From: Octopus sinensis
Lineage: Eukaryota
NCBI RefSeq assembly: GCF_006345805.1
Contig: NC_043011.1
Coordinates: forward strand, 66,290,464 to 66,354,463
Length of the DNA stretch: 64,000 nucleotides
Direction: 5' to 3'
The notes below the pieces were generated by a model. The model ran no database searches. It was not told where the DNA came from and saw nothing but the letters and a program-made list of their open reading frames with translations. Positions 1,776 through 36,032 of this stretch are shown piece after piece. Position numbers and translations under genes: made by a program. Within the stretch, counting starts at the first letter, position 1. Each line of letters opens with the position of its first letter.

Positions 1776-5560
<3,785 letters not shown>

Positions 5561-8312: not shown

Positions 8313-10149
8313 TGGTTGGCATCCTTTCTGTCTAGGGAGACAATGGAGTTGCGCATAAAGTAGTCTAGTCCGGCTTTTATATTTCATGTGCTGATACATT
8401 TCCTGCTGCGGCTGTGTAGTCCTATCCTGGACAAACTCTCCCTCTGGCAGGTACCGCAAATGTAGCGAAGACAGTTCCTGGCTGGTGGTAATGCCATAGT
8501 CTCTTGTTGACGTCTCTTCTTTTCTTTACATTTCTCCTCTCTCTCTCTATGTCATTCCTTTGTATTCCCTCTTTTACGGTACGACGCCATTTTCCACGGT
8601 TGCCGGCAACTGCCTCCCAACCGCTAATATTGATGTTGCAGGCCTTCATGTCCCTTTTGCAAACATCCTTGTAACGTAAGATCGGTCTACCCACAGACCT
8701 AGTACCCCTAGCAAGCTCTCCGTAGAGTATGTCCTTGGGGATTCTGCCATCTTTCATACGGCTAACATGCCCAAGCCATCTCATACGTCTTTGTGTGAGG
8801 AGTGCAAACATGCTTGGTATTCCTGCTTGCCTGAGGACATCTTTGTTGGGGATATGATTCTGCCATTTGATGCGGAGGATTTTTCGGAGGCAGCGCAGGT
8901 GAAAGATGTTTAGACGACGCTCTTGGCGTGTGTATAGCGTCCAGGTCTCACTTCCATGCAGTAGAGTGCTGAGTACACATGCCTGGTAGGTCTTCATTTT
9001 CGTGGTCTTGGTCAGCTTATTGTTGTCCCAAGCCCGTTTGGAGAGTTGGGCCATCGCAGCAGCTGCCTTGCTAATGTGTATATTGAGCTCAGCGTCAAGG
9101 GATAGGTTGTAGGTGACGGTAGAGCCCAGATAGGTAAACTTCTCCACCTCTTGTAATCTGTGGTCTCCAATATGTATGTTTGGGATGTCCGATGTAGCCT
9201 GGCTCATGATGTTGGTATTCTTAAGGCTGATAGCTAAGCCAAAGTCGTTACATGCTTGCTCAAAACAGTTAATGAGCCTTTGGAGGGCTTTTTCTGTGTG
9301 TGTTACCAGAGCGGCATCATCAGCAAATAACATCTCCTTGATCAGGATGTTTCTGATTTTGGTCTTGGCACGCAGGTGCGAGAGATTGAACAGTTTACCG
9401 TCGCTTCTACTGTGCAGAAACACTCCATCATCTGATGTCTGAAAGGCATGTGAAAGTAAGAGCGAGAAGAAGATCCCAAGCAATGTAGGAGCGAGGACAC
9501 AACCTTGCTTTACCCCGTTTTTTATTTGGAAGGTTGCTGATGTTGAACCGTCGTGCTGTATGGTGCCTTGCATGTCATCATGGAAAGACTTGATGATCCT
9601 CAGCAGCTTTGGTGGACATCCTATTCTTTGGAGCAGGATGAAGAGGTCTGTTCTGCTTACCGAGTCAAAAGCCTCTGTTAGATCAATGAAGGCCATATAC
9701 AATGGCATTTTCTGCTCTCTGCACTTCTCCTGAAGTTGGTGTATGGAGAATATCATATCGATAGTTGATCTGTTCCTTCAAAGCCACACTGCGATTCAGG
9801 AGAGATTCGAGAAGCAAGTAGTTGTAGCCTGGCCAGGGTAACGCGGGCAAGATCTTGACACTCTCGAGTGCCTGCCTCAGCCACTGTAGTCTCCCGTGAG
9901 TAGAGATCCTGGTAGTGCTCCACCCATCTATCCATTTGCTTGCCTTGATCCCTGATGAGATCTCCAGTAGTTTATTTTAAGAGGGGCTGACTTTGTTGCG
10001 GATGGACCGAGGGCCTTCTTCAATTCGGCATACATCCCACGGGTGTCGCCCCTGTCAGCAGCTGACTGGATACTCTGACAGATTTCCTGCCAATACCGAT
10101 TTGCACAGCGTCTGGCTGTCAGTTGGGTTTTATTTCGTGCCTTTCTGAG
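8312..10149 (-). mobile_element. RTE-clade LINE R1 (5'-truncated, with an internal deletion)
   Basis: RT motifs QGCVLAP, FADD, FTYLGS and RLRWLGHV-like in ORF 8422..9756. Homologous to 51790-55500. Confidence 0.92.
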
Positions 10150-10330
10150 TATGTATATATATATATATATATATATAAGTATGTATATATATATAAAGGC
10201 TTTACTCTTTTATTTATTTCAGTCATTTTACTGTGGCCATGCTGGAGCACCGCCTTCCGTCGAGCAAATCGATCACAGGCCTTTTTCCTTGCGATCCTAG
10301 TACTTATTCTATCAGTCTCTTTTGCCGAAC

Positions 10331-12565
10331 CACGGTCAAGAAGTGGGACCAGATGTGTGAGACACTTCACAAGCACTTCGCCGAGTTGTTCGGGAGGTGC
10401 GGGAGGCTGGATCATGGTGAGGCCCTTAGGGACTTCCTGTCTGGTGGTCCGCGTTTCTCAGCACGAGAGGCTGAGTGCTGTGAAGGGCCAATCACAGCCG
10501 AGGAGGTAATCGAGGTGTTGGGCAAGTGCCCCGAGGAGAAGTCGCCGGATCTGGATGTTCTGCCCTATGAAATTTATAAAAGTATGCCAGACTTGTTCGG
10601 GCACCTGCTGGCTAGGGTTTACGCCAACCTGCAGCAGAATGGGAGAATTCCCAAGTCTGCGAGCCGGGGGGTTGTGACTTTGAACAGGAAGGACCCGAGC
10701 ATGGGGGACGAGATAGGAAACTTCAGGCCCATAACTCTGCTGAACACAGAGTTAAAGATTCTAGCAAAAAGGTTGGCACGGGCCGTGGACAAACTTGTCG
10801 GGGAAGCGCAAACGTGCGCTATCCCTGGCAGAACGATCCACGATAATCTCCACCTTATACGCTACTCCTTAGAGAGGGTGGGGAGCTTTCTGGCGCAGGG
10901 GGAGCACTGGTACATTTAGACCAGTGTAAAGCATTTGATAGGGTCGACCATCGGTACTTGGCGGCGGTCCTCGGAGAAGCTGGCCTAGGACCAAACTTTC
11001 GAGGTTGGATCGCTGCTTTGTATAGCGACATCGAGTCTGTAGTCAAGGTGAACGGTTTATTTTCGAAGCCGTTCAGGATCGAACGTTCAGTTTGTCAGGG
11101 GTGTCCCCTGTCTTCGCTCCTATACGTATTGGCTCTTGATCCTTTGCTGCGGATGTTGGAGGCACTAGGGGGCGCGCCGCATGATCTATGGTGTGGAAGA
11201 GGAGCTACGCCGTATGCGGATGACACCTCCATCATCGTGGCAGACGAAGGCCAGCTTCCAGTGGTGGAAGAGACCATCAAAAGCTACGAGTCGGTGGCAG
11301 GAGCAAAGGTTAACAAGGACAAGTCGGTCGGTTTGCAACTCGGCACCTGGAGGGGCAAGCAGATGTCGTCCAATAACGTTGTGGGGCGTTGGACGGAAGG
11401 TCCTGTTAAGCTAGTCGTCGTCTGGATTGGTCCAGACCTCTAGATAGAGAAAAATTGGAGTGAGGTTGCCAGCAAGTTGACCGCTCTAACCCAAACCTGG
11501 TCTGGGTTGACGTTATCCCTGCTAGGGAAGGCGGAGGTGGTGCAGATGTTTATAGCATCAGTAATCACCTACCGTCTGACCGTGGTGCCTTGCCCCGATT
11601 TGTGGTTGAACAAGTTGGGGAGAATCCTTTTCCGCTTTTTGTGGAAAGGAGGAAAGCCACTTGAAAAGCGCTCTGTCTGCTGCCAGAAACAGCTAAATGC
11701 TGGGCTACGGATGCCTTGGCTGAGGATGCGAAAACTCGCGTTAAGGTTGAGGCACTTCTGGCTTTACCTGGATGGAGAGCCGGTGTGGTCACTGCAAGTC
11801 CGGTTCTACCTTCTCCAGTTAACATCCCTAACGGACATCGGTGCATGGATCAAGCGGAAACGTAAACTCGGCGAATGGCATTTGGAGTGCCGTCAGGCGC
11901 TCCAGCTACTCTCTCGGGCGGGCAACGCCGGCAACAGGAGTTCCACTACGGATTTCTATAGTGGGTTCGTGGAACTTATGTCAGAAGACGCCTTTGGAGA
12001 AACCGTAGGCTACGATGAAAATCAGTTGGTCAACCTTTTCCGGAGGACGTTCGGGCCGGGGTATCTGGATAATTACTAGAAATCCATGGCCTGGCAGTGT
12101 TTCCGTGCGGCTTTACCTGTTCGCGACAAGCTGTCAAGGCACGGAAGTGCCGTCTCGCCGACATGCCCGCTTTATGAGCAGGATAGGGAAACCGTCTTGC
12201 ACGCATTCGTGGAGTGTCCGGAGTTATCGGGACTGATAGCTTTTGCCGAACAACTGTTGTCAGTGATGAGAAGAGTACAGCTATCAGCTGAGTCTATCAT
12301 CGAGATTGTGCCGCCTCCTTTCCTTAACAGAGAGAGAAAGGCTTGTTTTTTTCTGTGTAGTAGCCATACTGAAAGAAACAGTATGGAAGACGCGTACGAA
12401 AGGTATAGTGACAGGCACCTTTGTCTCCGGCCAGGGGTTGATTAACTTTTTTAGCTACCACCTCAGTAGCAAACTCTGGCTGGAGAAGAGGTGTCTGTCA
12501 CGAGATATGTTTGTGAAAAGATGGAAGCCTGTGGCATGCAAGCTAGGTATGTGTAGCACCAGGTA
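10331..12565 (+). mobile_element. Tx1/L1-clade LINE ORF2 (RT plus C-terminal Cys/His knuckle), frameshifted
   Basis: KSPDLD.LPYE.YK, NFRPITLLNTELKILAK, QTCAIPGRTIHDNL, QGCPLS, YADD and CP....ETVLHAFVEC in successive ORFs. Confidence 0.9.
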
Positions 12566-12625
12566 AGTTTGACCGGATCAAAAAGTAGAGGTCCTACCCG
12601 GATGGCTGGGTGTCTGTCCCACATG

Positions 12626-12990
12626 TTACCTGGAAAATTTGAATTTTGTCCGTCTTTTATATAACAGGGCGGCCACTACCTCTACAGGATCTACTTCCGG
12701 TGGTGCTTCTGCAATCCTGACCCGGGACGTCCTGCGTCCCCTATAGGTTGGCAGAAGTACCACCACCTTGGTTTTTAGGGGATTCACAGAATGCCTGCGG
12801 GCTACCTCTTCCCCCGAGAAGCGGACCTCCACAGTGATATATGCCCGTCCCCTGGTGACAGTCACAATGACCTTCCAAATCGGGGACAGGCATTTCTCGA
12901 TAGTATTCTTTTCAAAATGTTTGAACATTCTGCTTTGTGGACAGAAGGTTTTTAAACACTACGGTCCGCTTCTCGGTCTCCACGATACTG
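12626..12990 (-). mobile_element. Possible Tx1-type ORF1 fragment, inverted against the adjacent ORF2
   Basis: ORF 12626..12928 (VVVLLPTYRGRRTSRVRIAEAPPEV..VEVVAALL) resembles RRM-like ORF1 of Tx1 elements. Resemblance judged by eye only. Confidence 0.4.
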
Positions 12991-13640
12991 GCGGAGGGTG
13001 ATATTTTTACATCACCACCCTCTTCTTTCATTCTCTTAAATAGCTCGACGAGCTATTGATGTCAATGTTCTCGGTTGCCACTGCGGCTACCGCCCAAACC
13101 TTTTTACTACAGTTATCAACATTGCTCTCCTCTAGAGCACTATTTTCGTGAATAATCTCAACAGACACTATTCTGTTGAAATTAGTATTAGACATCACAA
13201 AAAATACAAATATTGGTTTCACACAAAACTGGGAAACCTATAAAAAGTTTTTCTTGCAAGCAGTTCAATGAGTGGTAAAAAGCAGTTCAAAAATTTCAAT
13301 TCCCACTCCCATTCGTGGGAGGGACACGAAAATAGTCTGGCAAGACTATATACAGTCACGAAGATAAAAAGCCACAATGGCTAACAGTCCAACAGTAACA
13401 AATTATCCAATTATTCCCCGGTAAAACCGGAGAACAAGACAGTTCAACAACGTTCAAAAACAAATTTTCAGTAGTAAAATGCAACAAGTTCCAGATAGTA
13501 CGAAGTAATATTAACAACACAGCAAAACTCTTACCGGGAAGAAAACGCGTCCAAACCGTAGTAAGGTAAGCCAAGTCACTCTTCAGTCAGTAAGGTTAGC
13601 AAGCTACTTACCACACAGCCACTCCAACGCCTATTTTAGA

Positions 13641-13758
13641 AAGACTTTTACAGTACCTAGGTTTCCCAAGCGGTCAGCCATCTAAGTAGCAACTAGGCTC
13701 GACTTAACTTCGAAGATCGCACGAGAAGCGATGTTTTCAAAGTGATATGGCCATAAAC
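13641..13758 (-). pseudogene. Degenerate full-length 5S rRNA copy
   Basis: Minus strand reads GTTTATGGCCATATCAC...CTCGTGCGATCTTCGAAGTTAAG...TACTTAGATGGCTGACCGCTTGGGAAAC..GGTACTGTA, colinear with eukaryotic 5S but with an internal deletion and many substitutions. Confidence 0.8.
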
Positions 13759-13791
13759 ATATATCTATATCTATATCTATCTATCTATATC

Positions 13792-13855
<64 letters not shown>

Positions 13856-13882
13856 AGGCCAAAGAGTGTACGGGCCTCGCTC

Positions 13883-14256
13883 TATATATTATTTGTAGAA
13901 AAATACAAACTGGGACAAGAACGTAAAACATTTAGAAGACGATACAAAAACACGGACGGGACATTCGAAGCCTTCAATCTTCAGTCAAGAACCGGATCAT
14001 CCTCGCAATTTCGGCTGATTAATCTTGAGATCGCTCCGATCCATTTTCCAAGAAATCTGATGCTCGTAGCTTAGTTTTTCCATGGGGCTGGCCGGATCGG
14101 AGCGATCTAAAGATTAATCAGCCGAAATTACTAGGATGATCCGTTTCTTGACTGAAGATTGAAGGCTTCGAATGTCCCGTTCGTGTTTTTTGTATCGTCT
14201 TCTAAATGTTTTACGTTCTTGTCCCAATTTGTATTTTTCTACATTTAATATATATA
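13883..14256. mobile_element. Foldback/MITE: about 160-bp inverted arms with a 51-bp spacer
   Basis: 13883-14042 is the near-perfect reverse complement of 14094-14256. TA-rich ends. Confidence 0.9.
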
Positions 14257-14258
14257 TA

Positions 14259-15551
14259 CGAGGGGCGTTCAATAAGTAATGCCCCTGACCCACTTCCCAT
14301 AGCAGTAGAGCAACGAAACTTGGCACAGTTATTAGTCTTTTTCTACATAGGAATCACTCAGAGTTACACATTTCTCCCATCGTTTGAGGCAACTCTGGAG
14401 ACCGTTTTTGTAGAAGACCCCAGCTTGGTCCTGAAACCACGACGTGACTTCAGAAATCAAAGCTGCATCATCTGGGAAACGCTTTCCTTTCAAAAACAAC
14501 TTCATGGGTAGGAAGAGGTGAAAATCAGAGGTTGCAAGGTAAGGAGAGTAGGGGGATGGGGGAGGAGTTCATAGCCGCACGCCTGTGCTTCTGATCTGGC
14601 GATACGCGAGTTGTAGACCGGAGCATTGTCCTGCAGGAGGAGGACGCCTTTGCTGATCTTGCCCCGCCTCTTGATTTTGATAGCTTCTCTTAATTTCCTC
14701 AAAAGTGAAGCATTATAGGCTCCTGTAATTGTGGTACCCTTTGCCAGGAAATCTGTCATCACTACTCCGTCCTGGTCCCAGAAGACTGTGAGTATAACCT
14801 TGCCAGCGGAGGGCTGCACCCTTGCCTTCTTTGGAGGAGGTGAGTCACGGAGCTTCCACTGCATTGACTGGGCTTTGGTCTATGGATTATAGTGACGGAC
14901 CCAGGTTTCATCCTGTGTAATCAGTCTTTTGAAAAGTTTTGACTCATCTTCTTGGCACATCTCCAAATTCATCCTCGAGCACTCAACGCGTTCTTGCTTC
15001 TGGAAAGGTGTGAGCAACCTGGGAATCCATCTGGCAGACACCTTTTGCATATGCAAATGGTCATGAATGATAGTTTCCACAGACCCGGTACTAAACCTGA
15101 CCTCATGGGCTATTTGGCGAATAGTTATGTGTCGATCTTCCAAATTGGCAGCCTCAACTTGACGGACAGATGGCTCATCAATGGCAGAAGGGGGGCGACC
15201 AGATCTGGGAGCTGTTTCCACAGAGTTCCGACCATGTTTGAATTCACGATGCCAGCGTTGTACAAGATCATATGATGGGGCATCAGCACCATAAGTTACT
15301 TTCATTTCATCAAAAGTCTCCCGTGGTGTGCGACCTTTCAAATACAAAAAACCGGATCACTGCTCGACAATCAACAGGCTCCATTTCACACTTGGCTCAG
15401 TTCAAACACCTGTAAATCAGAAACCACAATTAGTTCAGAGCTGTAGTTTTCCACTTCATCTATAGAGGTATGAATAATTACACATGTAAATTTTCAGCTA
15501 GATCAAACAACTGCAAGTGGGTCAGAGGCATTACTTATTGAACGCCCCTCG
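14259..15551 (-). mobile_element. Full-length mariner (irritans/Himar-like), 1293 bp, transposase disrupted
   Basis: About 37-bp TIRs (CGAGGGGCGTTCAATAAGTAATGCC...) with TA target duplication. Motifs RSGRP, WIPRLLT, DETW, QDNAP and LPHPP. ATG at 15384, frameshifted between ORFs 14880..15347 and 14502..14864. Confidence 0.95.
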
Positions 15552-15598
15552 TATATATTTGTCTATGTATGTTTATGTATATACCTAAAATTACGTAT

Positions 15599-15635
<37 letters not shown>

Positions 15636-16821
15636 AAATGTACACATGTATATATATATATATATATATACATACACACACACACAGTCACGCGAAACTG
15701 AAACTCACTATCCACACACATACACCCGTATAATATAATTGTTTGTGCTCCTTCACAGTGACAGCAATATCGACGAACATTAATGGCGGTGCCGACAAAA
15801 CTAATTTGTATTATACGCGAAAAATCCCATACCAAGCTTGTTGCAAGTTATATTGACAGGAAGTTGACATTTTCAATATTATGAATCCATCAAATATATG
15901 AAAATGGAATCGTTTTGCTATTACTAGTTACCGAGGAGGAGAACAAAAATGAAAACATGTTTCATAATTATTTTGTCTCTGCAGCAAGTAATCTGTTGAC
16001 GCAACTGTCTTTTCTTAATCTCAAATATTTAATTTTGGTATATGCTTTAACATATGCTACCTCGATCTATTTTGATATATTATCTTTTATTACAATTTAT
16101 TATATTGTATTAGCGTGGACGATTTTTTAATTGTATATACGACACATGAAAATTTGTGTTTCTCCGATTTAAGCTGCCGGAAACTATAAATTCACTTTTA
16201 GTGAGAAATATTATTACAGAGCGTATTACAAACATTTGAGGAGAAATATATATATTTAGTCTCCTTTTTTTATTCATGTGTTTCATAATGAATGCTTTAA
16301 ACAAAATGTACACAACGGTAATGTCTATTATATTCTCAAAGATCAAAAAGTAGCAATCTGGCAGAAAATTTAGAAAATTTTGTCCGTTTACGCCCTGAGT
16401 TCAAATTCCGCCAAGAGTGATTTTGTCTTCCGAATTTTCGGAATCAATAGTCAATTACAGCAATGCCGGTGCTGAATTTGTACCTATTTTATCAAAAAGA
16501 AAAGGCAGATTAAATGCAAATTCATTGTGACAAAATTTGAACTCTGAACGTAATGCAGTACAGGAAGGTTTGCCCTGTGTGCTATCGGTCCTGCCAATTC
16601 TCTTTAATAATATAAATAACAGACATTAGCATAGTGTACTTCTTGTCTCTTATACTAGAATCATTCCTTACAAAACTTATGAATACAAAATGTAGAGTAA
16701 GTACACATTTTTCTCCTTAAATGTTTGTAACACCATCTGTAATATCCATTTTCAGGGAAAGTGGATTAATTTCTTTTCGGCATCTTAAACTTGTAAATAC
16801 ATAAATATTTAACGTCGCAGA

Positions 16822-16948
16822 TATAAAATTAAAGCGTCAAATAATTCACTATGCTAATAACATTACTCAAAAAATGTCATGAAAGATAATATTTGAAAAC
16901 GGTTCGAACTAACATATGTTACAGCATCTTCTAAATAAATCTATTTAA
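16822..16948 (+). promoter_or_regulatory. Candidate TATA elements of the peptide gene (TATAAAA 16822-16828; TATTTAA 16942-16948)
   Basis: Motif and position upstream of the ATG at 16989. Both are kept in copy 2. The start site is unknown. Confidence 0.35.
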
Positions 16949-16988
16949 GGATAAGTAAAGAATTGCGTGTTGTAGAGACTGAATCACT

Positions 16989-17025
16989 ATGAAACTTACT
17001 CTGTTCATTTTTGCTCTCCTCTTTG
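16989..17025 (+). CDS. Secreted Cys-rich peptide, copy 1, exon 1 of 3 (MKLTLFIFALLF-G, signal peptide)
   Basis: ATG, hydrophobic stretch, and a strong phase-1 donor G|GTAAGT at 17026. Confidence 0.8.
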
Positions 17026-18090
17026 GTAAGTAGTTATTGCAAAATTATTTTATATTATTGTCATTTGTCTGATGAGTTCATATTTTACCATGTGAGATTT
17101 CCATCAATATATCTAGCAACAATATTTCTACGAGATTTCTCCATACGTATAATATTTATCTGTACCTCCTTTATACAGCTATAGTTTGTCTAAATCGTAT
17201 TCACTGGCATTAAGCACCCATGTTATATGTGTATATATGTGTGCGTGTGTGTGTGAGTGTGTGTGTGTACACGGGCCTGTGTGCATGTGTCTGTGCATAT
17301 ATGTGTATAAGCATATATATGCATTCATATGGTTATAAATACATTTAGATATATATGTGTGTATGTGCTTGCATGGGCGTGTTTGTGTGGTTGTGTGTCT
17401 GCGGAAATGGTGTTTCTTATGTCACCCTATCATAACAATTTCCGTTGATTTGAAAGAGTCAGCAATACATTATATTGACTGAATATTTGTTATAATTTCA
17501 CAAAACTAGTTTCGAGTATGACTTTGTAGATTTGGTCAACCAGCAAACATGGGACTGGTTGTAAGGGGTGCATGGATACGCGCGATCGCTTGTGTGTATT
17601 TATTTATGTGCAAACAGGCGAAATTGTGTCTGCTTCTGTGGTTAATGAAAAAAAAATACGTTTATAAAATTCCAAAATCTGACGCTTAGGAATTCAACAG
17701 AAAACAACTTTAAAAAAATGAATAGGCAATTTATTAAGACAAAGATTTCAGTTAAGATCTCCCCAGAAATAAAAAGCCATCTTTAACTTATAAACTTTGC
17801 ATGTCATCTACAAAAAAACATGACAGCAGTGCATAGATGACTTGTCAGTAGTCACACCTTATAACCTTGAATGGCTGCAGACGTACTGCACCGCATAGAC
17901 ACATATCTCGTTTAAAGAAAAAAAGCCCAAACGTTAAAAACAAAACTGGAGTGATTTTACTCAGTTATTTTTGTAAGATTTGATGCCATAAAATATAACG
18001 GTTGACGTAAATTACCTCAAAAAATGTGTTGTAAATTCTATTCAGAGTATTACATATGCAACCACTAACAACCAAACTTTACTTTTCTAG

Positions 18091-18193
18091 GGAACCTATT
18101 CGCAGTGGATGTCAAGAAATGCGAAGGTTTAGCGAGAAAACATTGCGCTAACGATTTTGCGCACTTTCAACAATTTTATATAGAAACTTGCGA
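18091..18193 (+). CDS. Secreted Cys-rich peptide, copy 1, exon 2 of 3 (G-NLFAVDVKKCEGLARKHCANDFAHFQQFYIETC-D)
   Basis: Branch CTAAC at 18065, tttacttttctag acceptor, 103 nt open in phase 1 to 2, donor GA|GTATGT. Confidence 0.8.
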
Positions 18194-18197
18194 GTAT

Positions 18198-18232
<35 letters not shown>

Positions 18233-18259
18233 TACTGAAATCTATCAACGATAATATTA

Positions 18260-18320
<61 letters not shown>

Positions 18321-18325
18321 CTCTA

Positions 18326-18356
<31 letters not shown>

Positions 18357-18412
18357 ACCTTTCTATATATATACATATTTATATATATATATATACATCC
18401 ATCAATCCATAC

Positions 18413-18466
<54 letters not shown>

Positions 18467-18484
18467 GTATATATAACTGAAAAC

Positions 18485-18538
<54 letters not shown>

Positions 18539-18678
18539 GTGCACGTATATATGTGATTGTATATGTGTATTATATATATACACACATATAAGTGTAATGA
18601 ATAATGGGGAGACACGCAGATGTTATTTAAATCTTTTATAAAACCATTTCTATAACATTTTGTGAGTTTGTGTTTCAG

Positions 18679-18718
18679 TCTTCCAGGGAATTATCACCCA
18701 TGCAAGTGTGATTACTAA
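18679..18718 (+). CDS. Secreted Cys-rich peptide, copy 1, exon 3 of 3 (D-LPGNYHPCKCDY*)
   Basis: tgtgtttcag acceptor with compatible phase 2, TAA at 18716-18718, ATTAAA 66 nt downstream. Confidence 0.7.
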
Positions 18719-18783
18719 CTTCTTAGGCACCTGTGTAACGTTAGGCTCCCCCTTTAGCTGTTTCTCTGGATATTTCCTTGTAA

Positions 18784-18789
18784 ATTAAA
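18784..18789 (+). terminator. Polyadenylation signal ATTAAA, peptide gene copy 1
   Basis: Variant poly(A) hexamer just after the stop codon. Also present at 36496-36501. Confidence 0.55.
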
Positions 18790-18795
18790 CACACT

Positions 18796-18838
<43 letters not shown>

Positions 18839-18844
<6 letters not shown>

Positions 18845-19113
18845 ATCACGTGACCGACCAAGCAATCAGATGTTGTTACACATCGCTGGTCACAATGCGT
18901 TCGAATGACGCCAAGCGAGCAGGCCAAGAGAAGTAAGAGTGGGAGAAAGACTGGTGAAAGAGTACAGCAGGGATCACCCCACCCCTGCCGGAGTCTCGTG
19001 GAGCTTTTAGGTGTTTTCGCTCAATAAATACTCACAACGCCCGGTCTGGGAATCGAAACCGCGATCCTGCGACCGCGAGTCCGCTGCCCTAACCACTAGG
19101 CCATTGCGCCTCC
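18839..19113 (-). mobile_element. tRNA-derived SINE family 2
   Basis: Head ggaggcgcaatggcctagtggttagg...ggtttcgattccc with a (TA)n tail. Paralogue at 36552-36830. Confidence 0.85.
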
Positions 19114-19310
19114 ACACACTCATGACCGATAGACGAAGTACAAATCTTGAGGTTGATTTGTTCGTTTAAAACCCTTCAAGTCAGTCACCCTGAATGGCTA
19201 CAGTCACATTATTAAAGGATGTAAAAGCATTAATAAATAAAAGAAAATATATCCCCAAGCGTAAACAAATTACATGATTATTTACTATATGCGTATTAAC
19301 TTATTTAATA

Positions 19311-20012
19311 CGAGGGGCGTTCAATAAGTAATGCCCCTGACCCACTTCCCATAGCGGTAGAGCAACGAAACTTGGCACAGTCATTAGTCTTATCCTACAT
19401 AGGAAGTACACAGAGTTATGCATTTCTCCCATCGTTTGATACAGCTCTGGAGACCGTTTTTGTAGAAGACCCCAGCTTGGTCCTCCAACCACGAAGTGAC
19501 TTCAGAAATCAAGGCTGCATCATCTGGGAAACGCTTTCCTTTCAAAATCACCTTCATGGCTGGGAAGAGGTGAAAGTCAGAGGGTGCAAGGGGAGGGGTT
19601 CATAGCTGTACGCCTGTGCTTCTGATCTGGAGACACGCGAGTTGTGGACCGGAGCGTTGTCCTGCAGGAGGAGGATGACTTTGCTGATCTTGCCAAGCCT
19701 CTTTATTTTGATAGCTTCTATTAATTTCCTCAAAAGTGAAGCATAATAGGCTCCTGTAATTGTGGTACCCTTTGCCAGGAAATCTGTCATCACTACTCCG
19801 TCCTGGACCCAGAAGACTGTTAGCATAACCTTGTCGGCAGATCACTGCTCGACACTCAAGAGGCTCCATTTCACACTTGACTCAGTTAAAACACCTGTAA
19901 ATCAGAAACCACAATTAGTTCAAAGATGCAATTCGTCACTTTATCTATAGAAGTATAAATAAGTGCACATATTGCGACTGCAAGTGGGTCATTTCTTATT
20001 GAACGACGCTCG
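19311..20012 (-). mobile_element. Internally deleted mariner (same family as 14259-15551)
   Basis: Left TIR intact, right TIR degenerate, TA flanks, C-terminal transposase remnants. Same insertion site as 37167-38306. Confidence 0.9.
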
Positions 20013-20204
20013 TATGTTGCAAAGGCCGGTCTTATCAGTATTTATTGGACGTGTAGAAGTTTATCAATCGCGAGTGCAAACTCGGCATAGATAAACTTTT
20101 AGCTATAAATTCTTGCATTGATCATTAATGTTAACAAATGTATTAATATACACCCCCAAAAGCATATGTATATGCAGGGAAACAATTTTTTTTTCAAGTG
20201 GCTG

Positions 20205-20387
20205 CGTTGTAAGTAGCTTGCTTACCAACCACAGGGTTCCGGGCTCAGCCCCACTGCGTGCAACCTTAGGCAAGTGTCTTCTGCAATAGCCTCGGGCCGA
20301 CCACAAGCTTGTGACTGGATTTGGTAAACGGAAACTTAAAGAAGCCCCTTCGTATATATGTACATGGATATATATATGTATATAGAA

Positions 20388-20444
<57 letters not shown>

Positions 20445-20660
20445 TGTGTATGTGTGTGTGTTTGTGTGTCTGCGTTTGTACCACCAACATCGCTTGATAA
20501 CCGATGCTGGTGTGTTAATGTCCCCGTTACTTATCAGTTCGGCAAAAGAGACCGTTAGAGTACGTACTAAGCTTACAGGGAATAAGTCCTGGGGTCGATT
20601 TGCTCGACTAAAGGCGGTGCTCCAACATGGCCACAGTCAAATAACTGAAACAATTAAAAG
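20205..20660 (+). mobile_element. tRNA-derived SINE family 1
   Basis: Homologous to 4251-4778, with the central (TA)n(TG)n tract. Confidence 0.85.
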
Positions 20661-20996
20661 AGTAAATATTTCAATGTTCCTTTTCTTAGTGTGGGACTAC
20701 ATGTTTCATTGATCCTTTTCAGCACCTACATTCAATTTCTGCGTTGCTTTGAAAGAAGAGGCGATGACTGCTTTGAATACTTTAAGAAGAAGCACTTCTG
20801 TCGCGTAAGCACTTTATTAACCTATTTTTTGTTGGGAGGCGTATAAACTGAAGAATCAAATAGTATAGAAAACAACAAACAGAAATTTTGTTGATGGTTC
20901 GTTGAAATCTCACAGGTATTCGACAAAAGAAATGATTATGTTGTGCGGAATTTAACTGACAAGAGCTCTGTCGTCATAAATTTAACATAGGCCTAT

Positions 20997-21161
20997 GAGT
21001 GGCTGTATGGTAAGTAGCTTGCTTACCAACAACATGGTTCCGGCTTCAGTCCCATTGCGTTGCACCTCGGGCATGTGTTTTCTACTATAACCTCGGGCCG
21101 ACCAAAGCCTTGTGAGTGAATTTGGTAGGCAGAAACTGAAAGAAGCTCGTCGTATATATGT

Positions 21162-21202
<41 letters not shown>

Positions 21203-21453
21203 GGTGTACGTGCGTGTGTATGTGTGTGCGTATGTTTGTGTGTATGTTTGTGTGTCTGTGTTTGTCCCCCCAACATCGCTTCACAACCGATGCTAATATG
21301 TTTACGTCCCCGTAACTTAGTGATTCGGCGAAAGATACCGATAGAACCAGTTCTAAGCTTACAAAGAATACGTCCTGGGATCGATTTGCTCAACAAGGCG
21401 GTACTCCAGCTTGGCCACACTCAAATGTGTGAAATAAGTAAAAGAGTAAAAGA
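20997..21453 (+). mobile_element. tRNA-derived SINE family 1
   Basis: Homologous to 4251-4778. Confidence 0.85.
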
Positions 21454-21915
21454 GTCGGATACGTTAATATTGTGAGTAGATTTAGTTGCAAATAATGATG
21501 AAAAGGCGATATCTCCCTTATTATTATCCGAAGTAATTAAAGTGTTTGCAAAATATTATTGATTAGCTCAGAGTAATCATCCATGCGACACGTTCTACGT
21601 GTGTAAGAAAGAGTTCAAAGCAGGAATGTCGAATACACCGTATATTGGTCATGGCATCAAAACGATTGAAAGGAAAAGCACCCAGAACAAATTTTCCGAA
21701 ATATAGTTCAACATTTGCTTCTCATTGGTATCCAAATAAATTTGAACGAACATTTAATCGCTGAAGTCATAGAGTATATTACATATTTCGTTGTGAGGTT
21801 TTATGGAATCCGGATCAAACTCAGGTTGCATTTGTGAAGATAAAAATAAATACAAAATGTTTCGTATTTATAATTTTATATTAATTTATTATTCCTTCTT
21901 TTATTTTAGGCGTGG

Positions 21916-24900
21916 ATGACTGATTTGAACACCGGTAACAAAGTTAAGGTACGCGATATCATCTGAACTATTTTATCATAATTTTAACTGCTTTATAACT
22001 GATGCAAATTGTAATTTAACACGGAGGATATAGCTAATGCAACATACCATTTTTGCAACATAACGTTATACAGAGAATGTCTGTGTAATACAGATTTATG
22101 ACATTTGTAAAATATTTGATCAACTACATAATAACATTCCTAGTTTAATATAAAATAAGTTAACGTACCCATTATTACTTGTATTAGTATTATTAACCAA
22201 CAGCCAAAATGATTACAATATCAATCCAATGGATGATCACATATCAATATGGTGCGCGTACATTGACATCACTGTTTCTCATTATATATATGTAATGATA
22301 TATATATATATATATATATATATAATAATAATAACAATAATAAATATTAGGGAATAAATCCAAACTTACAGGGAAAAATCAGATTTAGGATTGAATCCAA
22401 TTTATAGTAAAATATTATATTATATAAATTAGAGACAAAACCACTATTATGAAAATCAAACAAAGAAAGACTTAATCCAATACATAAATTAATTTATATA
22501 ATTTAGAAATTTAACAATTATTAATATCCAATTAATTTCTTTGTTTGATTTGCATAATAGTGGTTTTGCCTCTAATTTATATATATATATATATATAGCA
22601 ATACATTTATAATTTTCAAAATATTTTATAGCATAAAATATACTCATTCGCCATTCAACCGTGCAGAGTGTTAATTCAATTTTCATTTATTATTTCGTAA
22701 TAAACTATTCGTTGCACCAACTCGTAGCCTATCACTGACAGTCTGTAATTGTTTTAGTTTCAACATAGTGTTTCAGGTGAAACACCGTTCACGGCGAGTA
22801 CACTTCATAAAGCGCCTTTCCCTATCATGTATAGAGATATACTACTTTACATCCCTTCTCTTTACAGATGATCTGCCAATCAACAATATTTACTACAGCT
22901 GTGGGTATGTTACTGAATTGATGCACAACAAAATAGGCTCAATGCTACCACAATAACACACCTGTGTTATTCTGAAGATTTTACTAAAACTACAGTCATG
23001 TGACTATGAAATACGTCATCACAGTTATGTGAATGAAAACATAGTAACAACATTTTTATTTCAATTTTACTTTTAATTAAACCATGAAAATTCAATATCT
23101 AGTAAATTATTTTATGGTTTTACTGCAACCAAGAGGAAGATAGCGACCACGCTGGAGTTCTGTGTACGTAATTTCCATTACTATGGTTTTCGTAAAATTG
23201 CAGGAACGTTCTTCAGGAATTGCAAAATAGTAAAGACCCCAGGGAATACTGAAACTAATGTACTTTCACCCCAGGTATACCATTCAATTGCTATGGCAAT
23301 ATATTCAAAATTTGCAGGCCAACACACTTATGTATACAGTTTATTTAAATAATGGTTTCAATTACAAAATTTCTATGTAGATTGCTACAGATAATTATAA
23401 GGATTATAGTTATTATGTATAAGGCATCGAGCTTCCATAATCTTTAGCACATTTGGCGAAATGCTCAGCGGTATTTTGCCTGTCTCTGCATTCTGAGTTC
23501 AAATTCTCCCTAGATCGAAATTACATTTCATCCTTTAAAGGCTGAAAAAATTCGTAATGGAAGGAACATAAACCTTTCACAGACTCGTCTCCTGGCTACC
23601 CTACCCGGATGTGGGTTTCATATTTCCAGCATCTTTGTCTCACATGTAGTACTACTTCTCTCTCCGGTTGTTTCTATGAACACTGAACGCCTCAGCAGCA
23701 GCAACAGCGCATACCACCATTCTGATGACCTCACAGTATGGTGGCAGTATGAATGTGATATCCCTTTGTCTACCTACTGTTGTCGATGTTTCTGTAAAGA
23801 TCTTTATGTAAGTAATGTGCGAGAGTGAAGTAGATTTTCTCGAGTTAAGGACAAGAGAACAGGAACTCGTCCTAAGATTAACCTATGACACTACATTATG
23901 TCGATGCTTATAACTTGAATAGTTTCTGCTTCAGGGGGCATGAATGAGAAAGGCCATCCATGATAATTTCATTATCGAAGAAGCATCACATGGCACACAG
24001 AATTGCCTGGACTTTACGTACACGAAATCTAGAACAGGCATGTGAAAAGTGATTGCACATGTAATACTTGTTAGTATAAATACTTCGTTGAAAATCTATA
24101 TTGTCAAGTCCAATTAGAAATTACACAAGAAAAACCAAGGAGCAGCCATCTTTGTCAGTGTAACTGGGGGCGTAGCCTACATTTTCATCACATAGGACGA
24201 CAAAAAATGCAGGTAATCCTTAGTTGTGATAGTTGTAATACTATTGTGCAGATATGTAGAGGATATCAACAATATCATTACGACAGTCCTATTGATGATT
24301 CTTCGGACGCCTAGGGAATTACGATGGAGTACATTAAGAGTATAGCTAACTCCATCGACCAGAGTATGAAGGTAGCGATTACCTACTACACTAAGCACCA
24401 GAGCAACATATTTCCTGTTTTAGTTACAGGACTTTAGTTACAGATTACGAACAAGTTCCAACACTTCCACAGCGTTTATATAAAACTCAGAGCTTCCAAA
24501 TACGTCCTTTATAAGAATTCAGTTTTATCACTCAATAAGAGAACAAGTATATACATAGCGGATTTCGTCAGGATAATGAAGAACATATTTCCCTTTTCAG
24601 ACCCTGTGAAATAATGTGGCATGCACAGGACTTTATGTTTAGTATGCATTTCGCAGTCTACGACGGGTCATATTGGCGAAATGGAATATATATTCATATA
24701 TCTATTTGTATATGGACACATTACCATCCCTAACACATTTTTGGATCGATCCAGCCTACATGCAATGTATAGTTTGATATATAAACACATGTATTCTTTC
24801 CTTTAAAATGATAAAGGAACGTTAGAGCAGTTCAAGGCAAAAGAGATGCTACAATAAATGTTTGTTTACGAAAATGCGGATGAGAGGATTCGAGCCTGAT

Positions 24901-25850
24901 ATTGCATTTAATAACTTTTGCAGGTTAACAATTCACAAGATGATTCCAATACATTAAAATGCATAACGCTTCATGGTTGCGAGATCATGAGAATATATTG
25001 TACAGATATGTTTATAGTTTAATACCGTCCATATGGTGCTTATTACACTTTCCATTCCATACATTTTCAAAAATATATGCTAAAATAGATTTACATAAAT
25101 GCTGATCTGAGTGTAAAATAAGTTTGTCACGAAAGAGAGAGAGGAATTTATATCATTCACAGCAAAAAAGAAACGGTTGTTAAGTACCGAAATGATCAGT
25201 CTTCGGCACATTATCAATTTCTCATCACTAAATGCATATTTTATCATTCGTTTCATTCTTCAATCTCGACAGCACATTCTTCCTGATAATATGACAATGA
25301 AGTTTGAGTTATAACTTATAGTGAGCCAGTCATTGATTTTGTGTAGTTCTTTATTATTGTATTGTAGATTACAATCGTATCATTTCTGTCAGTATGGGTT
25401 CAGCTTTCTCAGTAAACTGATGAAAATGACACCGCATTTTAGATAAGGCTCATCACATTCAGTGGAATGATAATAGGCTGACACGACATACTTCTTTAAA
25501 AAAGATCATCCGAGGAGCAGTGTTTTACGCATTGGATGCATAATGTCAATTACACAAGAACTAACCTGTGTACAGCAGGTTTTCAATGCGCTGAAACTGT
25601 TGAAAACAAAAAGTCATGCATTCCGTTTCCTATCATTTGCCTGTTTACCTAAACTCTACGGATACTGCTGTATGTAGAGTAGCAAGATCATTTGTGGCGT
25701 GTGATGACATCTGGCAGTCAGTAAATGTGAAAGGGCTTTGCACATGCGCACATACAAACGCACATGTTCCTTCAATGGAAGTAACAGAGATACAAGCAAT
25801 ATTCAAACTATTTCTCTCTGTAGCTTTCATCTTTGACTTGTTTCAGTCAT
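21916..25850 (+). pseudogene. Decayed long ORF, copy P2 (MITE/SINE insertions at about 22290-22620 and 23350-23790)
   Basis: Conserved translated blocks with P1: PTAK..TISIQW...YQYGARTLTSL, KY.INY.ITFL, VG.LL, MQYI.N.QA..TYV, V.C.SEVDF, LVLRLT, LPNT.FIR. In-frame stops. Confidence 0.6.
22421..22583. mobile_element. About 160-bp AT-rich MITE inside P2 (also near 40720-40885)
   Basis: 22421-22468 and 22536-22583 are inverted arms (2 mismatches in 45). TA flanks. Absent from P1. Confidence 0.75.
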
Positions 25851-26220
25851 GAGACTGCGGCAAAAAGGGGTCAGCGCCGTGAAAAATTCTTAGTCGAACG
25901 AATTGACACCAGTACGTATACCATACACCTGGGACTTATACTATCGTTCTCTTTGCCGAATCGCTAATCTATTGGGGCTGAAACCTGCCAACACCAGTTG
26001 TCAATCGGTTGTGGGGTCCAAATAAAGACACAAGAAACATGTATAGGACATATACGTGTAGATATGAGTGTGCGTATGCGTGCGGGTGTGTGTGTGTTTG
26101 TAAAAGATGGGTTGCTTTTAGTTTCCTTCTACCATATACATTCACAAGACACTGGTCGACCGGAGGCCACAGTAGAGGGTATTTACCCAATGTATCACGC
26201 AAGGGCCTGCACCAGGTAAC
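25830..26220 (-). mobile_element. Diverged SINE family 1 relative
   Basis: 3' body motifs (ctctttgccgaa, gttgtcaa, ttcacaag). Duplicated near 44140-44530. Confidence 0.55.
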
Positions 26221-27129
26221 ATCTGATCGGGAATCAGGTTTCGTACTCCACAGAGACGCCTACGCCTATATACTGCATGAATTTTTGATATATTAATTTA
26301 CAAATACATATAGGTCTTGAGGCCGAGGTTCGATTTAGACGTAATGCCATGAGTATTTAGAATTGCATGTACCAGTGCATGCACAACTTTATAGAAATAT
26401 ATACGCATATATCTCTAAGTCATGTTTTGCATGTATAATTAAAAGGAGATAAACTGAGAGAAAAAACCCTTAGAATTTATTTGATTGTAATTCAAAAAGT
26501 AAAAAGAAAAATATATTTCATGATATCAAATATTCTTTTCTACTCTAGGCACAAGGCCCAAAATTTGGTGGGAGGGAGCCAGTTGATTAGATCCACCCCA
26601 GTATGCAGTTGGTACTTAATTTATCGACCCCGAAAAGACGTAAGGCAAAGTTGTAGTATAATGCATACAACATTATTGATTGGCGAAAATATTCCCATTT
26701 CTAAACAGGGAAGACAATTCGAAAGTAGTGATGTTAATTTGAATGAAGTTATTCGAAAGATGGCATTGTTAAGTGAAGAAGATAGACAAGAACAAGTGTG
26801 TCTACATATATCAAAATATGCAATCAGCACTTTAACTGTCCTTGTATTCAGTAGACACAAAATACATTTTCGAAAAGACATCGTTAGAGGTAGTAGAGAC
26901 ACTTATGGGAATTAATATTATACAAGATATTGTAATAGTGGACTGAAAAAAATCATAAAAAAAGAAATACAAATGAAGGGGGAAAGAAAAATACATAAGT
27001 AAGGAAAACAAATATGAAATGAGAAAAATTCGGAGGAAAATGTAAGATAGCTAATACAATTATAGAAAAAAAATGGTTCAAGTGAAAACAAACTATATTT
27101 GGTGTACATAGAAATTAATACAAGATAGT

Positions 27130-27448
27130 AAAGGAAAGACATTCGATAGGTTATTATTTAAGACAGTAAAGAATTGAAAGTTTGATGTAATCTATGTAAA
27201 ATATTAAGGGTGCGATCGTCTAATTGAGTGAGCCTAAAGTAATGAAAACGTCAAATCTCTGGAACGGAAGCATGAAATGAGAACAGAAATAGAAACAATA
27301 AATGCAAGTGGACTTTTGAATTCAAAATAACAGCCAAAAAGATATAGATATATGCCTTTGGGATAGTTAACTTGGATGTTGGAGTAGATTGATAACATCT
27401 AGAGTAGCCAATATTGCCTCTTCATTAATTGTTTTTGCTAGGTGTACT
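27130..27448 (-). mobile_element. Penelope-like RT remnant, truncated at the 27448 breakpoint
   Basis: Near-identical to 45430-45752, where the sequence continues into a recognisable Penelope RT. Confidence 0.6.
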
Positions 27449-27555
27449 CGTTTAGGCAATTACTTCTTCCGAGGTTTTGCTACTTATATAACCCATGTAG
27501 CCTGGATTTTATCTACTTCATTCCCTAAATTTAGACACGCAAACACATAGACAGT

Positions 27556-27589
<34 letters not shown>

Positions 27590-27701
27590 CATGTGTGTGT
27601 GTGTATACAAATATTCTTCTATATTTAAGAGTTGGGGAATTATGTACATTATATACATTAGTTACATTTGACGGATATTTGTCTTTATTTTTATTCTTGT
27701 T

Positions 27702-27747
27702 AACACAACATTTCGTCTGATATACCCTGCAGCCTTCATCAAGTGTC
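27702..27747 (-). ncRNA. Degenerate minimal hammerhead, family 2 (also 49521-49566 on + and 47472-47517 on -)
   Basis: gacac-tTGATGA-aggctg(cagggtatat)cagac-GAAA-tg-TT-gtgtt: hammerhead topology with a core C3-to-U change. Confidence 0.5.
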
Positions 27748-27816
27748 TTGGGGAAGTTTCGAACCTGGGTTCTCATTCCTAAGGCATTTTACGATGGTGA
27801 TATTATTATTATTATT

Positions 27817-29617
27817 AGTATTCTATGTTTGACTTTTGCTTTATGTCTGTACAAGTTGGCTCCATTTCTCACCCACAGACCTCAAGAGACAATAGGTTGG
27901 AAGTTCTGTGCCATATATTTGGGTTTGTTTTTGTTGTTTTTTTTTGGTGTTGTACTAGTGAATGTCTAATACATTAAAATAAATAAATAAATAAATAAAT
28001 AAAAACAATAAAAATAAAAAAAAGTTTGTTTTAAACCTTGGGATTACATAGAGAGTATTTTGCGTAGGATATGAACAGTTCCAATGAGCACTATCTTTTG
28101 AATTTCTGCCATTTTGGGGTTTCCTGGTATCTGAGTTAGGTAGCAATCAGTCCCTTTCGCTATCATTCCCAGGGCACCTATGACAACAGGTATTGTTTTA
28201 GTCTTCAGCTTCCACATTTTGCTGATTTCTATTTCAAGATCTTTATATTTGCTCAGTTTTTGGTAGGTCTTGACAGATACGTTTATATCGATTGGGACAG
28301 TCATATCAATGAGGAGGCATGTTCTTTGTCTGAAGTCTTTCAATATGATGTCTGGCCTATTTGCATCTATCTTCCTGTCAGTTTGAATGGTGAAGTTCCA
28401 GAGGAGTGAGATGTGGTCATTTTCAAGCACAGGAGGTGGATTGTGTTCCCACCAGTTTTTTGCATGGGGCAAATCCAGGTTTTTGCAAATTACCCAGTGA
28501 ATATATTGTGCAGCTCTATGATGCCTACTGAGGTACTCTGTAGGCGCTAGAAGACTGCATTTGGAGACAACATGGTCAATGGTTTCATTTTGTTGTCGGC
28601 ATACACGACATGTTGGGCTACTGCCGTTCTTTAATATGTTGGCCTGGTAGTTTCTTGTTGGTAGGCATTGATCTTGAGCTGCTATGATAAACCCCTCTGT
28701 TTCAGATTTTAAGCCAGAGGCCATTAGCCATTGATGGGTCAGGGCTTTGTCGATATCTGCATTATACGCTCTCTTTGAGTATTTGCCATAGATAAGTTTT
28801 TCTTGCTATTTATTATTCAGAATATCTAAGGCCGCAGTTTTGGCACGGGTTTTCATGCGCCTAGCTTTTTCTGTACTTGTTTTTTGTATATCTATCTCTA
28901 ATTCCGAAATTGGTTGTATTCGGAATTCACTTAGATATTCCTTTGCCTGTTTTGTTACTGAGTATGATACTTTCTTGTTTTCATGTTTTGAGACAACTTT
29001 TAACATCCAGTCCTCAGAGTTTTTCAGGTACGTGCCTAGGCCAATTGTAGCAATCTTCATTGTTATTGCCATTTGCAAAAGACCACGACCTCCCACTTTT
29101 CTTGGCAGATAGAGTCGTTCTGTATCTGCCTTAGGGTGGTGCATTCTATGCATTGTCAACAGTTTCCTTATTTTTCTGTCGAGCTGACATATTTCAGTAA
29201 TTGACCAGTTAACAATATTGAAACTGTAAGTCACGACTGGTATGGCTAATGCATTGATCGCTTCGATTCTGTTTCTTGCATTCAGCTCTGTCTTGAGTAT
29301 TGCTCTCACTCTTCGATAGCATTCTCTCCTGATCCTTTCCTTCATCTCTGAATGCCTTATTCCGTTCCCTTCAATTACCCCTAGGTACATGTAGCTCTCC
29401 GCTGGGTCTAGTTCTTTTATGACATTCTGCTGGTCAAGGTTAACGTTAGATGTTTCTGTCATTTTTCCTTTGATAAAGGTAGCTTTTGCACATTTATCGA
29501 GGCCGAATTGCATCCTGATGTCGTCACTGAATTGTTTGACTATCGCTAGTAAGCCCTTGAGTTGTTGGTCATTTTTTGCAAAAAGCTTTAAATCATCCAT
29601 GTAAATGAGATGATTTA
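27817..29617 (-). mobile_element. 5'-truncated R4/Dong-like LINE, family Y (D3)
   Basis: YMDDLKL, FGLDKC, YLGV, CRVC...ETIDH...C, RPDIILKD and LLIDMTVP. (ATT)n at both ends. Confidence 0.92.
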
Positions 29618-29634
29618 TATTATTATTATTATTA

Positions 29635-29682
<48 letters not shown>

Positions 29683-29700
29683 GATTATTATTATTATTAT

Positions 29701-31579: not shown

Positions 31580-31586
31580 AGTATGT

Positions 31587-31640
<54 letters not shown>

Positions 31641-31644
31641 TATG

Positions 31645-31992
31645 TATATATATATATAGTCTTTTACTCTTTTATTTATTTCACTCATTTTACTGTGGAA
31701 ATGCTGGAGCACCGCCTTCCGTCGAGCAAATCGATCCCAGGACTTATTCCTTGCGATCCTAGTACTTATTCTATCAGTCTCTTTTGCCGAACCACTTAGT
31801 TAAGAGGACGTGAACACACCAGCATCAGTTGTCAAGCGATGTTCGCGGGACAAACACACACACACGCACATATATATATACATATATACGTCGGGCTTCT
31901 TTCAGTTTCCGTCTACCAAATCCATTCACAAGGATTTTGACCTCCCGAGGCTATAGTAGAAGACACTTGCCCAAGTGGCCACGCAGTGGGAC
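31645..31992 (-). mobile_element. SINE family 1 (5' head truncated by the Tx1 element)
   Basis: Homologous to 4251-4778. Its shorter paralogue is at 10200-10333. Confidence 0.8.
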
Positions 31993-31994
31993 CA

Positions 31995-34098: not shown

Positions 34099-34700
34099 CT
34101 GAGTTCAAATTCCGCCAAGAGTGATTTTGTCTTCCAAATTTTCGGGATCGATAGTCAATTACAGTAATGCCGGTACTGAAATTGTATCTATTCTATCCCC
34201 CCCCCCAAAAAAAAAAGGCAGATTAAATGCAAATTCATTGTGACAAAATTTGAACTCCGAACGTAATGCAGTACAGGAAGGTTTGCCCTGTGTGCTATCG
34301 GTCCTGCCAATTCTCTTTAATAATATAAATAACAGACATTAGCATAGTGTACTTCTTGTCTCTTATACTAGAATCATTCCTTACAAAACTTATGAATACA
34401 AAATGTAGAGTAAGTACACATTTTTCTCCTTAAATGTTTGTAACACCATCTGTAATATCCATTTTCAGGGAAAGTGGATTAATTTCTTTTCGGCATCTTA
34501 AACTTGTAAATACATAAATATTAACGTCGCAGATATAAAATTAAAGCGTCAAATAATTCACTATGCTAATAACATTACTCAAAAAATGTCATGAAAGATA
34601 ATATTTGAAAACGGTTCGAACTAACATATGTTACAGCATCTTCTAAATAAATCTATTTAAGGATAAGTAAAGAATTGCGTGTTGTAGAGACTGAATCACT

Positions 34701-34737
34701 ATGAAACTTACTCTGTTCATTTTTGCTCTCCTCTTTG
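34701..34737 (+). CDS. Secreted Cys-rich peptide, copy 2, exon 1 of 3
   Basis: Identical to 16989-17025, with the GTAAGT donor. Confidence 0.8.
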
Positions 34738-35905: not shown

Positions 35906-35909
35906 GTAT

Positions 35910-35944
<35 letters not shown>

Positions 35945-35971: not shown

Positions 35972-36032
<61 letters not shown>

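Follow-up and report, generated by a model that had tools for sequence, protein, structure and literature searches.

In a 64,000-nucleotide (nt) stretch of Octopus sinensis DNA (NCBI RefSeq assembly GCF_006345805.1, contig NC_043011.1, positions 66,290,464 to 66,354,463 of the forward strand; hereafter the window, in which positions are counted from its first letter), we found a three-exon gene model that lies in a tandem duplication and encodes a putative 59-amino acid (aa) precursor with five Cys. Judging from its sequence, we assign a rough probability of 0.5 to the reading that this locus is a real gene, restricted to its lineage, whose product is a small secreted peptide. By scripted splicing and translation, the three exons yielded a 180-nt open reading frame (ORF) for the 59-aa product MKLTLFIFALLFGNLFAVDVKKCEGLARKHCANDFAHFQQFYIETCDLPGNYHPCKCDY, followed by a stop codon. 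The exon coordinates, GT-AG sites, CTAAC element, intron phases 1 and 2, ATTAAA and 59-aa product proposed by a first-pass annotation of this DNA were all reproduced from the sequence, and so was its exon-identical second copy at an offset of +17712, in which the splice-site flanks are identical too. The elements of the model are listed here in their order along the window.

16942-16949, + strand: TATA-like box TATTTAAG, 47 nt 5′ of the ATG; the motif occurs at 13% of random positions and carries little weight.
16989-17025, + strand: exon 1 coding part, copy 1, encoding MKLTLFIFALLF plus the first base of Gly13; it runs ATG…TTTG and is followed by the donor GTAAGT.
17026-18090, + strand: intron 1, phase 1, 1065 nt, with a (TG)n/(TA)n microsatellite, CTAAC, a pyrimidine tract and a TAG acceptor.
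18091-18193, + strand: exon 2, copy 1, encoding the end of the predicted signal peptide and three of the five Cys (…GNLFAVDVKKCEGLARKHCANDFAHFQQFYIETC…).
18194-18678, + strand: intron 2, phase 2, 485 nt, nearly all (TA)n and (TATC)n microsatellites.
18679-18718, + strand: exon 3 coding part, copy 1, encoding …LPGNYHPCKCDY and ending in a TAA stop; the least certain exon.
18784-18789, + strand: ATTAAA, a poly(A)-like signal 66 nt 3′ of the stop codon (background frequency 13%).
34701-36430, + strand: gene copy 2, with exons 34701-34737, 35803-35905 and 36391-36430; exons and splice flanks identical to those of copy 1.

The donors read G/GTAAGT in intron 1 and GA/GTATGT in intron 2, and the acceptors TTTTCTAG/G and GTTTCAG/T, respectively (a slash marks the exon boundary). 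Upstream of exon 2 the sequence is CACTAAC-N17-TTTTCTAG, whose branch-point-like CTAAC occupies 18065-18069, 22 nt 5′ of the exon 2 acceptor, while GTGTTTCAG stands upstream of exon 3. The start codon has a purine at −3 (background 50%), and the ATTAAA is the sole A(A/T)TAAA between 18194 and 19000. GC contents of 0.48, 0.30 and 0.38 at the first, second and third codon positions follow the usual coding pattern; the CpG observed/expected ratio of exon 2, 1.74, ranks in the top 2.6% of comparable 103-nt windows, and the exon 2 reading frame is open from 18069 to 18254 only.

Splice-site strength was scored with a home-made, approximate metazoan matrix not trained on cephalopods, by which intron 1 is strong, with a donor of 4.2 bits and an acceptor of 5.5 bits. 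An exhaustive scan of both strands for two- or three-exon models having a signal-peptide-like start and at least four Cys was then compared with null windows generated by Markov chains of order 1, 3 and 5; in the real window, only the two gene copies passed. The two copies of exon 1 are the sole signal-peptide-like ATG exons ending in a donor of at least 4 bits in the 128 kb of both strands (null, 0.4 per window). Further, among 79 strong acceptors, only the two exon 2 acceptors have a CTAAC in the branch-point zone, where this motif is found at 1.1% of random positions. An exon 1 and a CTAAC acceptor located approximately 1 kb apart, in a phase that opens a 34-codon frame, would be expected about 6e-4 times per window, calculated as a rough product of the null frequencies, and pure chance is thus an unlikely source of the exon 1/exon 2 unit.

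The predicted product has the layout of a small secretory precursor. By inspection and hydropathy, residues 1-17 form a putative signal segment with an n-region (MK), an h-region (LTLFIFALLF) and a c-region (GNLFA) that places Ala at −1 of the predicted cleavage site, with Leu, tolerated but atypical, at −3. Hydropathy is high at the N-terminus and drops after residue 17, and the phase-1 intron splits this signal-like n/h/c segment. The predicted mature part is a 42-mer of 4.9 kDa and pI 6.27, with 5 Lys/Arg versus 6 Asp/Glu; it holds five Cys (residues 23, 31, 46, 55 and 57), as had been counted before. Tryptic peptides of the predicted product include HCANDFAHFQQFYIETCDLPGNYHPCK and CEGLAR. 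Since the mature peptide is slightly acidic (pI 6.3), the antimicrobial role that the first-pass annotation offered as a hypothesis fits it poorly, and a cationic antimicrobial peptide was rejected as a candidate for want of a net positive charge; venom and pheromone roles are speculation.

Self-comparison of the window placed the gene within a tandem segmental duplication, approximately 8.4-27.4 kb versus 29.7-45.8 kb, of which the long interspersed nuclear element (LINE) part has a third copy at about 51.7-53.8 kb. The duplicate units run in the same direction at a distance of 17.7-21.9 kb, and their edges carry LINE copies. Two segments describe the relation between the units.

16546-18592 versus 34258-36304, no strand assigned: homogenised tract, with one substitution and one 1-nt indel in 2047 columns.
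12238-16395, no strand assigned: 4.1-kb segment missing from copy 2 (junction 34097/34099), containing a LINE 3′ end, a 5S-like element, a mariner fragment and an inverted exon 1 arm.

The homogenised tract runs from 440 nt upstream of exon 1 through intron 1 and exon 2 into the microsatellite-filled intron 2, most of which it includes, and over 16809-18797 the two copies differ by 5 substitutions and 0 indels. The remainder of the duplication diverges by 1.3%, a rate against which the homogenised tract has a Poisson P of 9e-11. A gene-free tract at 22395-25394 is as identical between the copies as the gene tract, and between 16395-27448 and 34099-45752 divergence is mosaic, near-identical tracts alternating with patches of 1-6%; patches adjoining them reach 2-6%. 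This pattern suggests gene conversion between the tandem duplicates or an assembly (haplotype-mosaic) effect, and the two gene copies were probably homogenised recently by gene conversion. In its direct units, its LINE edges and the alternation of near-identical with 1-6% divergent tracts, the locus resembles young tandem duplicates homogenised by that process. A false duplication, produced by assembling two haplotypes, is a possible alternative, but real paralogues are favoured by the 4.1-kb indel and by the LINE part, which diverges by 5%.

The 4.1-kb difference probably arose by loss from copy 2, not by gain in copy 1, because a LINE zf-RVT ORF (12086-12445) crosses the breakpoint. The LINE copies at the edges of the tandem units would fit a duplication that arose through their unequal recombination. 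Young LINE copies and fragments, 92-97% mutually identical, lie in both orientations at 8382-12445, 27445-34097, 48378-49826 and 51723-62589.

Going beyond the first-pass annotation, we also identified an inverted duplication of the 5′ part of the gene, which we read as older than the tandem duplication.

15597-16331, − strand: inverted arm, aligned with 16616-17364 of the + strand (blastn E = 4e-52, 67% identity; 63% in a global alignment).
15932-15965, − strand: diverged exon 1 paralogue, ATGAAACATGTTTTCATTTTTGTTCTCCTCCTCG/GTAACT, encoding MKHVFIFVLLL(G).

The inverted arm, which occurs in the copy 1 unit only, covers the promoter region and exon 1 and extends 340 nt into intron 1. Its exon 1 retains the ATG, the hydrophobic core and the GT donor, and the sole indel within the exon is of 3 nt, so that the frame is held; identity along the alignment peaks at 0.85 over 17005-17044, that is, in the 3′ half of exon 1 and the donor. 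Such retention is suggestive but not decisive. By tblastn and sensitive blastn within the window, exons 2 and 3 were found for the two gene copies only and none for the inverted paralogue. Gene models starting at the inverted exon 1 were rejected, as all of them run into microsatellite or mariner sequence, and this exon is best regarded as an orphan fragment.

A gap of 285 nt separates the two inverted arms, each of which terminates in (TG)n/(TA)n microsatellites. Two blocks, 16700-16745 and 16880-16925, are better conserved between the arms than their surroundings and might be regulatory. An AG also stands immediately 5′ of the start codon, at 16970-16977 (TGTTGTAG/AGAC), and the inverted paralogue retains GCTGCAG/AGAC near 15980. 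This AG might serve as an acceptor for the ATG exon, in which case an untranslated 5′ exon would lie upstream.

Several observations weigh against the reading of this locus as a real gene. No homologue or family was found that would support coding or secretion. Pfam searches of the peptide returned no family at E ≤ 0.01 and none relevant at E ≤ 10; a word-indexed search of 5.8 billion protein clusters with the 59-aa peptide gave no candidate, and its exact sequence was absent among 15 billion proteins. Degenerate back-translated patterns for two peptide stretches had no match in metagenome contigs, and a full-text search turned up no paper that prints any of nine peptide fragments. An exhaustive phmmer search with exon 2 (35 aa) returned one match only, P0001 (E = 2e-4), which was rejected as a homologue: it is an ORF of 21-residue tandem repeats on a 1.6-kb scaffold from a TARA ocean metagenome, the score adds up five repeats, and no Cys is aligned. 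A literature search combining octopus, cysteine-rich and signal peptide likewise gave nothing specific. Because the closest protein to a LINE reverse transcriptase ORF of the window, from Octopus bimaculoides, is 76% identical while the window copies are 95% mutually identical, the source species appears to be poorly represented in protein collections, and all the negative homology results are therefore weakened.

The same caution extends to the model itself. By the matrix used above, intron 2 is weak (donor 0.36 bits, acceptor 0.03 bits), and exon 3 is the weakest part of the predicted gene, one of several possible endings: both of its splice sites score close to 0 bits, and several other acceptors, or an unspliced intron 2, would lead to different C-termini. 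Five Cys is an odd number, unusual in a stable secreted mini-protein. In the model scan, simulated windows yielded 0.15-0.25 passing start codons per window, and 0.13 when the summed site score had to equal or exceed that observed; 13-15% of them, about 1 in 7, had at least one passing model, with scan thresholds that were chosen post hoc, which favours the real model. An intact exon 1 in the inverted paralogue would be expected by chance in approximately 5-9% of cases, a rough estimate from the substitution and indel frequencies of the alignment. Finally, the two coding-identical copies pointed out by the first-pass annotation are no sign of function, the non-coding parts and a gene-free tract being equally identical. 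Because the whole tract, introns and microsatellites included, appears to have been homogenised, the coding identity of the copies carries no information on selection, and copy identity as evidence of selection was ruled out by the divergence profile.

In a rival explanation, the locus would be non-functional, a chance arrangement or a decaying gene remnant in AT-/T-rich, repeat-laden DNA, with copies identical through recent duplication or homogenisation. DNA of this type is rich in GT/AG sites and in hydrophobic stretches that start with an ATG, the flanks consist of LINE and mariner debris, and the third exon 1 copy, which has no downstream exons, indicates that pieces of the locus persist without function; the near-zero intron 2 sites, the odd Cys number, the yield of the simulated windows and the failure to find a homologue, family or database entry all point the same way. 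Against this stand the pairing of the sole strong-donor signal exon with the sole CTAAC strong acceptor at the distance, phase and frame described above, the presence of a TATA-like box, a −3 purine and a single poly(A) signal, all in place, and the intactness of exon 1 in a copy that is 63-67% identical. We consider a non-functional locus unlikely, though it deserves serious weight. A second possibility is that transcription and the joining of exon 1 to exon 2 do occur but that the product differs from the 59 aa or is a non-coding RNA, through retention of intron 2, through acceptors at 18727, 18758, 19355, 19779 and others, or through an untranslated 5′ exon joined at the AG of 16975-16976. 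The weak donor and acceptor of intron 2 favour this, as do several equal or better acceptors that give other short C-termini, the alternative C-terminus that intron 2 retention would yield, and the AG just 5′ of the ATG that is kept in the inverted paralogue (TGTAG/AGAC versus TGCAG/AGAC). On the other hand, the acceptor of the proposed exon 3 is the nearest one, the exon contributes two further Cys and its stop codon lies 66 nt 5′ of the sole poly(A) signal, and a motif resembling the thyroglobulin type-1 (Thy-1) domain crosses the exon 2/3 junction, though that match is not significant. A different product is, in our view, quite improbable.

This Thy-1 resemblance raises a further explanation, that the peptide derives from a Thy-1 gene by truncation, or is what remains of one, with the signal peptide and first half of the domain kept and the CWCV half lost. 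A phmmer search of PDB with the mature peptide found saxiphilin only, at E = 3.5, but on both of its Thy-1 domains, aligning YIETCDLPGNYHPCKC with YIPQCDEKGNYHPVQC; it is the YIETCDLPGNYHPCKC motif that crosses the proposed exon 2/3 junction. The motif, aromatic-x3-C-D-x2-G-N-Y-x-P-x2-C, has the same spacing in the peptide as in saxiphilin, the MHC class II p41 invariant-chain fragment and the thyroglobulin repeats, and a peptide Cys lies about 22 residues upstream of it, at the Cys1 position; the Cys spacing equals that of the p41 fragment and thyroglobulin repeats (Cys1 … Y-x-x-x-C-D-x-x-G-N-Y-x-P-x-x-C). With a custom HMM built from p41/thyroglobulin alignments, the peptide scored 7.6 bits, which 115 of 20000 shuffles reached (p ~0.006), a value that is not significant for a family chosen post hoc. 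PF00086 did not match the peptide even at E ≤ 10, the family-agnostic search gave no better than the E value above, and no downstream CWCV exon was found in the window, where CWCV strings belong to a dispersed repeat. Unlike Thy-1, the peptide has the first half of the domain only, and other residues stand in place of the motif's conserved Pro and Gln, Lys replacing the Gln of Q-C. Membership in the Thy-1 domain family was rejected, since Cys4-6 and CWCV are missing and the product ends two residues past the Cys of the Q-C position. A Thy-1 relic is, in our view, very improbable, and we keep the resemblance as a lead only. We regard it as a long shot that the locus encodes a new octopod-restricted secreted mini-protein, derived from or convergent on half of a Thy-1 domain, forming a disulfide-linked dimer through its fifth Cys, with its gene amplified by tandem duplication and gene conversion. 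Amplification of this kind occurs in venom, defence or pheromone peptide genes.

Taken together, the gene interpretation of the first-pass annotation stands in its anatomy, while copy identity as a sign of function falls away, exon 3 is its soft spot and the antimicrobial role suits the peptide poorly. What the sequence shows is the anatomy of the model, the structure of the duplication and the absence of detectable relatives, whereas transcription, splicing, secretion, the cleavage site, disulfides and any biological role are inferred. For the real gene that we favour, we propose the following course. A TATA-like promoter would drive a primary transcript of about 1.85 kb, from which two GT-AG introns (1065 nt and 485 nt) would be removed to give an mRNA of about 0.3 kb, polyadenylated 3′ of the ATTAAA and encoding the 59-residue precursor with residues 1-17 as signal peptide. 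Small secretory precursors that are too short for co-translational targeting by the signal recognition particle (SRP) use the post-translational Sec61/Sec62 route. Because the predicted precursor is shorter than co-translational SRP targeting needs, it would probably enter the endoplasmic reticulum post-translationally via Sec61/Sec62. Cleavage after Ala17 would leave a 42-residue, five-Cys peptide, in which two internal disulfides and one spare thiol could form, making a covalent dimer possible, and further processing could occur at the Lys-Lys pair just N-terminal to Cys23. At the level of the genome, the gene would lie in a LINE-flanked tandem duplication whose copies were recently homogenised, probably by gene conversion, while a third copy, an orphan made up of the promoter and exon 1, would stem from an older inverted duplication.

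The window as a whole is AT-rich and full of microsatellites. All of its ORFs of at least 150 aa belong to non-long terminal repeat retrotransposons with endonuclease, RVT_1 and zf-RVT domains, and its large ORFs are all assigned to LINE or mariner elements. Other repeats and matches in it are the following.

14249-15554, 19302-19833 and 37158-38309, − strand: Mos1/mariner-type fragments (HTH_48, Transposase_1), including 14502-15347 and 19554-19826.
13645-13758, − strand: 5S rRNA match (Rfam RF00001), 58 bits versus a gathering score of 38, full length, diverged from typical 5S.
20368-20670, 21154-21456, 38653-38955 and 39435-39737, and inverted at 4250-4760: dispersed repeat of about 300-500 nt, copies 70-80% identical.

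Each gene copy is followed, at a distance of about 0.5 kb, by a mariner fragment, and another interrupts the region downstream of the inverted exon 1 copy. The 5S-like element sits within the 4.1-kb segment unique to copy 1, and the sequence right after the match (GGCGTTGGAGTGGCTGTGTGGTAAGTAGCTTGC…) presumably resembles the body of an abundant octopus short interspersed nuclear element (SINE); the element would be a 5S pseudogene or possibly a 5S-headed SINE. The dispersed repeat, probably a SINE-like element, starts beside a (TG)n run, and CWCV occurs by coincidence in its translation.

The favoured gene would find its nearest parallels among mollusc secreted peptides, such as those of three-exon conopeptide-type genes and the Aplysia pheromones (attractin). 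Like these, it would have a short precursor with a signal peptide directly before the Cys-bearing part, a phase-1 intron in the signal region, small exons and long repeat-filled introns, tandem gene duplication, and no homologues detectable beyond a narrow lineage. In contrast to them, it has five Cys in place of an even number, no recognised Cys framework and no evident propeptide, and no sequence similarity to them was found.

The present value of this ab initio model is that of a candidate. The locus also illustrates that selection cannot be read from the identity of duplicated coding sequences. Peptides of this type, with their tiny exons and lack of homologues, are often overlooked by standard annotation, and taxon-restricted secreted peptides can prove to be toxins, pheromones or signalling molecules. 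If the gene is real, it would add one more taxon-restricted small secreted peptide to those of cephalopods and would show a route by which such genes multiply, namely LINE-flanked tandem duplication followed by homogenisation, together with an older event in which the promoter and signal exon were duplicated in inverted orientation.

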